Below are positions 42,501 through 45,500 of a stretch of 64,000 nucleotides of DNA, one piece after another (position 1 is the stretch's first letter; each line of letters begins with the position of its first letter). The notes under the pieces were generated by a model. That model made no database searches. It was not told the origin of the DNA and saw only the letters and a list, made by a program, of their open reading frames with translations. The DNA is taken from assembly GCA_964035545.1 (NCBI GenBank), contig OZ037770.1, positions 13,072,642 to 13,136,641 on the forward strand, given 5' to 3'. The DNA comes from Bugula neritina. Lineage: Eukaryota; Animalia; Bryozoa. The translations under genes and the position numbers were made by a program.

Positions 42501-45500
42501 TTTACTAGCTGCAGAACCTAGTTTATAATGTTTGCTGTGTAAAGAATATCATATATATTCCCGAGTACAGGAAGGAAACTTTGGCTATGCTTTAAATTAC
42601 ACACTACTACAAATAGAGTACTATGAGAGTCTGGGTGAGCATGAAACTGTGGAGGTACTTGAAGACTCTGTTGACCTGTACAAGCAGGTCTTGGGGGGAG
42701 AACTTAAGGCAAAAGAGAAAGCAAAACTATCAGAGGCCTACCACTGTATACCTTCTACACATATTGATCCTAATTATCAACAACTCTGTAAAGGAAAAAC
42801 TGTTCTGGTATAAAGTATATTACATAATAATGTTAATTTATACATGTAAATGTTAGTTTATACATGTGTACGCCTGTGAGTGTGTGGGTTTCATTGGTGA
42901 AAGAGAGAGGGAGAGAGAGAGAGAGAGAGAGAGAGAGAGAGAGAGAGAGAGAGAGAGAGAGAGAGAGAGAGAGAGAGAGAGAGAGAGAGAGAGAGAGAGA
43001 GAGAGAGAGAGAGAGAGAGAGAGAGAGAGAGAGAGAGAGAGAGAGAGAGAGAGAGAGAGAGAGAGAGATAAAGTGTGTGCATGGGTTTCATTGGTGAGAG
43101 AGAGGGTGGGAGAAAAAGGGGGAAAGAGAGTGTAAGTGTGTGAGTTTCATTGGTAACACTGTTAATAAATATTATAGACAGAACATACAGACAAGAAGCC
43201 TCTTCATTGCCACTTATATACAAACAACAATCATCCTCTTCTCAGACTGTCTCCAGCTAAAATAGAAGAAATAAATACTGCATTTGGGTTGAACTTTGCT
43301 CATGATGTTTTGACAGAAAGAGAAATTGAGCTGTTAAAGCAGTTAGCAAGCTCAAAGGTGAGTGTAAAGATTGTTTCTTCTAACTCCTTGCATTGTAAAA
43401 CCTAGCACAGTCCAAACGATCACTGTAGAATTAAAGTCCCTTGTTTGAGGTAGCATTCATTTTCTTAGAGGCAGCTGTAGAATTTGCATATACACTTTTC
43501 GTATTTCAGAACGTTAGACCCTAAATATAACATAGTATGGAGTGTCTGCATGACTTTTTTTAACAAAATTTTAGTTTCAAGTATGAAAGTTCTGTTGGGA
43601 CTTTACATAAGCTGGGAAAGCTTTTCCCTAATGCATTAAAGCTTTTCACATATATCATCACAGCTATGCCAGCTATATTATGCTTTGTCTACACTTATTT
43701 TGGCTACTACACGCTGACCTTTTTGGCTGGTATAAAAAACCCAGCATTTGCAACTTGCAACTACACTTACAACTTATGATATAATGGTTTTCAAATTGCT
43801 ATTTTCTTTCATGCAGTCACCAACAATAAATATTTTCCTATACTAAAACACAACAAGTCCCTTTATACTTTCACTCTATCCTCAAAAGTTTAATTTGACC
43901 ATTAGTCATGTCCAACCATCAGCATATTTTCAGTAATTTTCACCGATTTTAGTTATTAGTATTTAATAATTTTATTGTTTTATAACAAACAACTTTGTTA
44001 AAGGGTGTTGAATAAAGCTTCAGCAAATTAAGTAGAAGGTTAGCGTTATTGCTTTTATTTATGAAACTGACTTGCCTAATTTTAAAGGGAATCAAATAAC
44101 AACTAATTTAGTCATGTATATCAGCTAGAAGAAAATCTTCACATATATTATAACTAGTTTTAGTAAAGTTATTAAAGGGTACCCGATATACAGCAAAATG
44201 TGTTGTTTATTCCAGTTTGAAGTATCCATGGTTGTTAAGGATGAGAAAAAAGGAAGTGGCTCCACGCTATTATTACAAAGCAGATCAAGCAACACGTAAA
44301 ATACTGACTAACTATCTATCAGCACCAAATAAAAATATGTTTCATAAAATTGGACATAAATAACTTGATTGATCAGTATATTCAATGTTGTATTAGTCTT
44401 ATTGACTTCAATATTTCAGGGCTTGGGTGTATGATGATAAGAAAGTTATTCGAGAGATGTCCAAAAGGGTTGCCACTATTTTAAACTTGGATGTAGACTC
44501 TGCAGAACCTTTTCAAGTAAGAACTTTTTTCTTTACATATGTCAGCTTGTGTTAGCTGTTTCTTGATACATACAAGCCAAATTGCTAAACCAATCACTCA
44601 CTGTCTTTCAGTGACAATGTATAGTGAATTGTGCTGCTGGTAACATGCACTGTAGAAGTTATTGAGATCTAATGTTTGAACATGTGCTCCTTGTGTGTGA
44701 GAGAGTTAGAGTAGAGTTAAGAAATAATAATCTAATTATAGAATATAATCCAACATTTATTGATACTAAGAATCTATGCAAACAAAAGTTACATCACAAA
44801 AATATTACATGAAATTAAAAGAACTAACTATTAAACTAGTCAGGTTAAGCCTATGCTACTAGCTTCCCAACAATGTGGTGCTAGAACCGAGTTCACTATA
44901 TATATATATATATATATATATATATATATATATATATATATATATATATATATATATATATATATATATATTTTGCAATGCTCGTGACTCCTAGGTGACC
45001 CCTAGAGTCACTTGAGCACTCTGGCTCGAGTTTACACACCTTTTAAATATGCTTTAGTAAAACTATAAGCTTTACTATTGCGAAGGTGTGGGCCATGGTA
45101 CTCTGTTCTGTGCTGATGAGGGGACAAATCCCGAAACAGCTGCTGTCCACAGATTGAGATATATGTGTATATATATATATATATATATATATATATATAT
45201 ATATATATATATATATATATATATATATATATATATATATATATATATATATATATATACATGTGCAGCACCTATCAGCGTATTGTCAGTTGCAAAACAA
45301 AGCCACGTTGAGTTAACTAGCCAATAAGATTGTCCGGCGCATAGTTGAGATTACATGCTGTTATTGGTAGATGCAGGTATTACTAATATTATACCACAAT
45401 TGACAATGCTAATGCTTGAATTTCCTTACAACAAATCAACATAGGTGATTGGCTAAACCATGGCCTCAGCGCTTACAGTGAATGTGTGTTTGTATGCTTC

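Follow-up and report, generated by a model that had tools for sequence, protein, structure and literature searches.

Metazoan type I hammerhead ribozymes reside within low-GC tandem repeats of 150-450 bp that are expressed as circular RNAs (PMC7229834), and elements of this type have been described as metazoan retrozymes without long terminal repeats (non-LTR retrozymes; Cervera and de la Pena, 2020, PMC7229834). Here we report on a hammerhead motif at positions 45107-45153 of a 64,000-nucleotide stretch of the genome of the bryozoan Bugula neritina (contig OZ037770.1, positions 13,072,642 to 13,136,641 of the forward strand; "the window" denotes this whole stretch). The motif is very probably part of a solo, 5'-truncated copy of a 271-nucleotide (nt), non-coding and non-autonomous metazoan non-LTR retrozyme that lies in an intronic (TA)n microsatellite of a prolyl 4-hydroxylase (P4H) gene. 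The element is species-specific and new but belongs to a known kind; the intronic hammerhead came with an ordinary transposon insertion and did not arise as a means of regulating the P4H gene.

Like the published metazoan retrozymes, the Bugula family carries a type I hammerhead in a short, low-GC, non-coding repeat that occurs as monomers through multimers. The unit is likewise predicted to be highly self-paired, and Penelope-like elements (PLEs) with hammerheads of their own co-exist in the genome. The family departs from its relatives in that the unit sequence is species-specific and in that the insertions lie almost exclusively in (TA)n, share a single 3' end and are mostly solo or truncated. 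The hammerheads in the pseudo-LTRs (pLTRs) of PLEs (Cervera and de la Pena, 2014; Arkhipova; Craig et al., 2021, PMC8557442) are also of type I and near the 3' end, and PLEs share with the retrozyme a bias to (TA)n, 5' truncation, and an arrangement as head-to-head inverted twins (retrozyme locus L015; PLE loci L034-L037). However, the retrozyme has no open reading frame and no similarity to the PLE found here, and its hammerhead is canonical, with an internal loop in helix I and a 4-bp helix II, unlike the minimal PLE variant.

Three further systems invite comparison. The weak, nearly palindromic helix III of newt satellite 2 and of the axolotl retrozyme allows a double hammerhead to form, as in the Bugula unit, and the axolotl hammerhead cleaves poorly as a monomer and well as a dimer (PMC7229834). 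Helix III comprises 1-2 bp in these amphibian motifs, whereas the Bugula unit has an A-U pair plus 3 bp and a triloop; given this longer helix, activity of the Bugula monomer may be better. In Schistosoma, the Sm-alpha repeats are short, dispersed or tandem sequences resembling short interspersed elements (SINEs), and they carry a canonical type I hammerhead and a tRNA part that resembles an RNA polymerase III promoter. In both hammerheads the proximal helix I has 6 bp and is followed by an internal loop, and the 4-bp helix II is capped by an A-rich loop, although the sequences differ and the tRNA part of Sm-alpha is not seen in the 271-nt unit. Lastly, the intronic hammerheads HH9 and HH10 of amniotes, on which de la Pena and Garcia-Robles worked in 2010, are reportedly single-copy and ultraconserved across species. 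A role of amniote intronic hammerheads in mRNA biogenesis has been mentioned (PMC7229834). The B. neritina motif is likewise a sense-strand hammerhead in an intron of a protein-coding gene but, unlike HH9 and HH10, it belongs to a copy of a high-copy mobile element that is ~1% diverged and absent from two paralogues of the gene.

The hammerhead motif and its retrozyme family

The motif, the element copy that contains it and the microsatellite around them are arranged as follows.

45101-45158, + strand: type I hammerhead with the helix I extension; core and helices at 45107-45153, predicted cut between C45147 and C45148
44897-44969, no strand: (TA)n tract upstream of the copy, forming the left side of the microsatellite that was targeted; AT microhomology blurs the 5' junction
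44970-45162, + strand: 5'-truncated retrozyme copy of 193 bases, unit positions 94-271 and then 1-15
45148-45162, + strand: invariant 3' end of the element, comprising CACAGAUUGAG and AUAU and ending 11-15 nt past the cut site; the same (TA)n junction occurs at least 346 times in the genome
45163-45259, no strand: (TA)n tract downstream of the copy, forming the right side of the targeted microsatellite; slightly irregular at first and perfect from 45168

All 15 core positions of a hammerhead are present, together with the G10.1-C11.1 and A15.1-U16.1 pairs, and the parts follow one another in the type I order, with helix I open. Helix I pairs UCUGUG (45107-45112) with CACAGA (45148-45153) over 6 bp, and it can be extended past a UGU/UU internal loop by CUC/GAG (45101-45103 with 45156-45158). 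The core segment CUGAUGA occupies 45113-45119. Helix II (45120-45132) is formed by GGGG/UCCC around an ACAAA loop, with three G-C pairs and one G-U pair, and GAA (45133-45135) then leads to A15.1 at 45136. Helix III comprises CAG/CUG with a CUG triloop (45137-45145) plus the A15.1-U16.1 pair; U16.1 is nucleotide 45146, and C17, the cut-site base and a non-G, is nucleotide 45147. The internal loop beyond the 6-bp helix I and the A-rich loop 2 are, in layout alone, compatible with a tertiary contact between the helix I loop and loop 2.

A descriptor requiring the core, at least 5 bp in helix I and at least 3 bp in each of helices II and III was applied to both strands of the 64-kb window. It matches one site, 45107-45153, and 300 mononucleotide shuffles gave a mean of 0.003 matches per shuffled window. 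A looser hammerhead pattern performs near chance in the window (8 matches versus 3.7 expected), and thus it is the complete architecture that constitutes the evidence.

The wider family was sought in the 216-Mb assembly. When the 193 bases at 44973-45165 were used as the query, the 58 matches scored among 744 first-look candidates were 96-100% identical and came from all large contigs, many of them spaced 271 bp apart. In an array at locus L006, successive cut sites are exactly 271 nt apart, and a hammerhead stands at both ends of the array, adjoining (TA)n. Arrays contain 2 to 4 or more units, and many units are solo. Counts in the genome were as follows.

48-nt hammerhead with at most 3 mismatches: 253 on the + strand and 254 on the - strand, 507 in total; control 0
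Junction of the element's 3' end with (TA)n: 179 on the + strand and 167 on the - strand, hence at least 346 insertions; control 0
Unit-to-unit junction: 29 on the + strand and 29 on the - strand, 58 in total; control 0

Because 346 end junctions compare with 58 internal junctions, most insertions appear to be solo or partial units with one terminal hammerhead, like the copy in the P4H intron. At least 100 of the hammerhead matches have no mismatch to the window copy, whose 48 nt are the modal sequence of the family. Measured against the reference unit, taken from the L006 array, the window copy has two mismatches in 193 bases (45027 and 45070), neither of them in the hammerhead, so the copy is very young and selection on it is not demonstrable.

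The 271-nt unit has a G+C content of 42.8%, and its longest stop-free stretch is 45 codons, as checked on a trimer. The units follow one another in simple tandem, with (TA)n on either side, and show no LTR, primer-binding site or polypurine tract, the latter two without an explicit search. Judged by these sequence-level features, the family qualifies as a metazoan non-LTR retrozyme. In circular form the unit is predicted to fold at -98.5 kcal/mol, compared with -59.3 +/- 5.2 kcal/mol for shuffled sequences (z -7.5), with 72% of its bases paired. A dimer of the hammerhead is predicted to fold as a double hammerhead, at -42.1 kcal/mol versus 2 x -15.6 kcal/mol for two monomers. The intermolecular helix III of this dimer has 10 of 11 bp paired and contributes -14.1 kcal/mol, versus -0.5 kcal/mol for helix III of the monomer. 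In the nearest-neighbour model, the hammerhead fold of the monomer lies 2.9 kcal/mol above an inactive minimum-free-energy fold, and helix III is predicted in ~4-6% of the ensemble, whether the motif is folded alone or in its intron context.

Some older copies, 92-95% identical (L002:95-153, L015, L020:782-838, L022:2284-2342 and L037:556-614), have in common a U-to-C change that converts the G-U pair of helix II to G-C; this looks like a subfamily marker that preserves the pair. In the copies at L002 and L027, U7, the sole freely variable core position, is a C. A tRNA-like stretch adjoins the retrozyme array at L006:2950-3020 and is possibly the head of a tRNA-derived SINE.

Copying of the element and a candidate helper

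Among ~21 distinct insertions the 3' end is constant, consisting of the cut site, CACAGAUUGAG and an AUAU that merges into (TA)n. Their 5' ends fall at unit positions 3, 4, 10, 12, 43, 45, 60, 73, 90, 93, 94, 127 and 230, and (TA)n nearly always precedes them. Target-primed reverse transcription characteristically leaves a constant 3' end and 5' truncation of variable extent, and the pattern points to this mechanism. The commonest "full" solo copy runs from position 12 to position 11-15 of the next turn, as though one full turn of a circle or multimer had been opened at AUAU. A cleaved linear monomer cannot have served as template, since the genomic 3' end extends 11-15 nt past the cut site; on the sequence pattern, the template must have been a ligated circle or an uncut multimer. 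Locus L015 contains a head-to-head retrozyme pair (1519-1730 on the - strand and 1923-2134 on the + strand), both truncated at position 60 and with their 3' ends outward, an arrangement that has been described for PLEs.

We propose the following route. Tandem transcripts would self-cleave at one hammerhead after another, probably paired as double hammerheads through the nearly palindromic helix III, and ligation would close the 271-nt RNA into a circle. A reverse transcriptase, most likely from a young PLE with the same (TA)n targets, would prime on a nicked microsatellite at the AUAU past the cut site. It would then copy around the circle or along the multimer, often stopping early to leave copies like the one in the P4H intron. 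The copy within the P4H pre-mRNA has one hammerhead, from which no circle could form, and any cleavage there would be a by-product of insertion and not evolved control.

A PLE family that might supply the reverse transcriptase was found from open frames adjoining retrozyme copies. One frame beside a retrozyme copy matches RVT_1 (E 5.6e-8), and in this PLE the reverse transcriptase is followed by a C-terminal GIY-YIG motif with CCHH cysteines, which are typical of canonical PLE endonucleases (PMC8557442). The Pfam model for GIY-YIG, PF01541, returned one match across the genome and missed the PLE endonuclease. This young family is represented by L033:745-2450 on the - strand (G000:C3:18516244-18517949) and also by loci L035-L039. 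Its reverse transcriptase has at least 119 genome matches, many at 96-98% identity, with open frames reaching 777 codons and 5' truncation in the pattern seen for the retrozyme, and inverted 5'-truncated twin copies occur. The PLE carries a minimal hammerhead of its own (CUGAAGA, a 6-bp helix II and an AUAU helix III), located 50-90 bp before its 3' end in (TA)n.

Retrozyme and PLE lie tail-to-tail in one (TA)n tract in two of the six PLE loci (L034:511-742 and L037:356-653; a raw count), which could reflect a shared target or coupled insertion. A PLE hammerhead lies at most 1.5 kb from a retrozyme in 2 of ~24 retrozyme loci. Because the two elements have no common sequence, it is from their target and junction style that a partnership is inferred. 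(TA)n is a preferred PLE target (PMC8557442), and retrozymes have been proposed to be dependants of PLEs (10.64898/2026.07.22.740005). The suggested partnership also agrees with the literature on mobilisation of retrozymes by PLEs (PMC7229834; PMC8557442; 10.64898/2026.07.22.740005; PMC11167929).

The host gene and competing explanations

Three tandem P4H paralogues lie on the + strand of the window, and exon pieces of copy 1 recur ~9 kb and ~16 kb downstream at 68-90% identity. The parts of copy 1 that surround the element are these.

44427-44516, + strand: P4H exon piece upstream of the intron, with 68-71% identity to its counterpart in paralogues 2 and 3
44517-45914, + strand: host intron of P4H paralogue 1, GT...AG, 1398 bp
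45915-45998, + strand: downstream P4H exon, which carries the HxD iron ligands (HHD)

The exons were compared singly by reference. A later copy-1 exon matches the catalytic domain of human P4HA2 among PDB sequences (E 2.4e-4), and an exon further upstream matches P4Ha_N in Pfam (E 0.0066), for which single exons are mostly too short to score. The homologous introns are ~518 bp in paralogue 2 (~53521-54038) and ~259 bp in paralogue 3 (~60665-60923), and they contain neither a retrozyme element nor a long (TA)n tract. An earlier, sequence-only reading had described an intact type I hammerhead with every core nucleotide and three stems, placed it in the sense strand of this intron upstream of the HxD exon, found it lacking from P4H copies 2 and 3, and likened it to hammerheads of the Penelope or retrozyme kind with a nearly palindromic helix III. 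Our results bear out this description. The core bases, helices and C17 at 45147 are all present, the intron is of the GT-AG type with an HHD exon following, the homologous introns lack the element, and the family is a retrozyme with a 271-nt unit.

The same reading went on to propose that the hammerhead acts as a copy-specific expression brake. Stated broadly, cleavage after C45147 by the sense-strand hammerhead would sever the P4H copy-1 pre-mRNA on the 5' side of the HxD exon and lower the output of paralogue 1 only, either as an evolved brake or as a side effect. We regard this explanation as unlikely. It is true that the motif is intact, lies on the sense strand and is identical over 48 nt to the modal family sequence. 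Furthermore, its 6-bp helix I, internal loop, distal helix and A-rich loop 2 resemble natural fast type I hammerheads, the layout being compared with that of the Schistosoma ribozyme. Yet the window contains a single hammerhead, so there is no partner in cis for a double hammerhead, and the 4-6% occupancy of the monomer helix III and the 2.9 kcal/mol that separate the hammerhead fold from the minimum also argue against efficient cutting, even though this helix (A-U plus 3 bp) is no shorter than those of invertebrate retrozymes whose hammerhead monomers cleave well (PMC7229834).

The position of the cut site, ~630 nt into a 1.4-kb intron, means that cleavage could compete with splicing. Fong and colleagues are said to have found in 2009 that only very fast hammerhead variants abort splicing. 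In HeLa reporters, according to PMC2288634 (citing Dye et al., 2006), a single efficient co-transcriptional hammerhead kept the upstream RNA tethered to RNA polymerase II, so even efficient cleavage need not stop expression. Xenopus retrozymes are relatively depleted from introns, which suggests some cost, but ~43% of their copies are nonetheless intronic and hence tolerated (10.64898/2026.07.22.740005).

The intron copy is one of at least 346 like insertions and differs by ~1% from the reference unit; it is thus too recent for selection to have acted, and no trace of selection is seen. Nor is there gene specificity or conservation of the locus, since the 48 nt occur 507 times and are absent from both paralogues. 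The proposed brake is therefore unsupported: the evidence describes an ordinary truncated copy with 2 differences in 193 bases, no second hammerhead in the window and a monomer helix III that is predicted to form ~4-6% of the time. A mild side effect on the mRNA yield of paralogue 1 is possible, but we think it unlikely that the solo copy measurably lowers copy-1 mRNA, and the chance that the intron copy has a selected regulatory function is slight at the very most. Another proposal is that intronic sense-strand solo retrozyme hammerheads in general cut host pre-mRNAs, best as double hammerheads formed in trans with abundant retrozyme RNA via the 10-of-11-bp helix III. We consider this highly improbable; if it were true, bursts of retrozyme expression would lower the output of genes carrying such copies.

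Several results weigh against the assignment of the motif to a retrozyme. At gathering score, Rfam has no match anywhere in the window. When 4227 Rfam families were compared with a 71-nt stretch, the best two were both hammerheads but fell below threshold: RAGATH-1-hammerhead scored 19.1 bits (E 0.17; threshold 56.3) and Hammerhead_3 scored 12.8 bits versus a gathering score of 48.5. The motif is thus under every Rfam hammerhead gathering score, and it does not pass the covariance-model search that the sequence-only reading had put forward as a check. A genome-wide search with RF00163 did not recover the retrozyme family among the 73 of 16234 candidates that were scored, and so carries little weight. 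The copies are too nearly identical to permit a covariation test, the G-U to G-C change in helix II of older copies being the sole recurrent helix change seen. BLAST of the 271-nt unit against the six PLE loci found neighbouring retrozyme copies only, with no PLE sequence. Finally, the identity of the element is read from its DNA, and self-cleavage, circular RNA and expression in B. neritina are predictions.

From such results it could be argued that the motif is hammerhead-like but catalytically dead or irrelevant, and that the family is a plain SINE-like or satellite repeat. The failure to reach Rfam gathering scores (19.1 bits versus 56.3), the miss by RF00163, the lack of usable covariation and the fact that the predicted minimum-free-energy fold of the monomer is not a hammerhead speak for this view. 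However, a dead motif does not readily account for the presence of all 15 core positions, both conserved pairs and a non-G at position 17, when 0.003 matches are expected per window, nor for a hammerhead that is unchanged, with 0 mismatches, in at least 100 copies. In addition, the period of the arrays equals the distance between cut sites, the arrays start and finish with a hammerhead, and like elements self-cleave and circularise in coral, mussel and axolotl (PMC7229834). We therefore consider a dead motif unlikely, and the family hammerhead is probably catalytically competent in some form.

That the copy is instead a solo pLTR, a fragment of an autonomous PLE and not a separate retrozyme, is very unlikely: PLE pLTRs do carry type I hammerheads, Xenopus retrozymes resemble pLTRs (10.64898/2026.07.22.740005) and B. 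neritina PLEs land in the same (TA)n tracts, but the 271-nt unit matches no PLE sequence in the six loci, which cover one PLE family, the PLE hammerhead is the different, minimal variant described above, and the 271-nt arrays have no open reading frame.

Other searches returned little. Matches to mir-297 and Pestivirus 3'UTR, obtained with Rfam in E-value mode on 301 nt, were dismissed as low-complexity (TA)n artefacts. Degenerate patterns for other hammerhead families gave genome-wide counts not above those of a reversed-pattern control, and a full-text search of a literature library for the exact hammerhead sequence found no paper there that contains it. At locus L031 (1501-1547, 697-753 and 2469-2529), a decayed motif, CUGAGGAG, adjoins a long (TA)n tract and is accompanied by two diverged retrozyme hammerheads, 91-93% identical. 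This decayed motif is the sole genome match to Rfam Hammerhead_1, at 25.4 bits, among the 73 of 16234 candidates scored.

Neighbouring features and significance

Other introns of P4H copy 1 contain long microsatellites at 41570-41720, 42864-43135 and 47047-47427, comprising (GT)n, (GA)n and a ~380-bp GTT/GGT-type tract, and copy 3 has a matching (GA)n tract at ~59313-59738. In paralogue 2 (54042-54107), the iron-binding HxD region reads QHYD, versus PHHD in copies 1 and 3, with the H and D ligands kept. Elsewhere in the window, a beta-1,4-galactosyltransferase-like gene lies on the - strand at 8606-10433, and a neighbouring open frame is filled by a coding minisatellite of the VTV/GNC type.

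For the P4H gene, the insertion probably means little, as a young transposon that tripled the length of one intron. The retrozyme family, in turn, shows the copying of an animal retrozyme with unusual clarity and is a good model for retrozyme mobilisation. Its hundreds of near-identical insertions, with a fixed 3' end, variable 5' truncation and a (TA)n target in common with a live PLE, support the published proposal that PLEs mobilise retrozymes, and its intronic copies in sense and antisense orientation form a natural set for measuring the cost of carrying a ribozyme within a gene.

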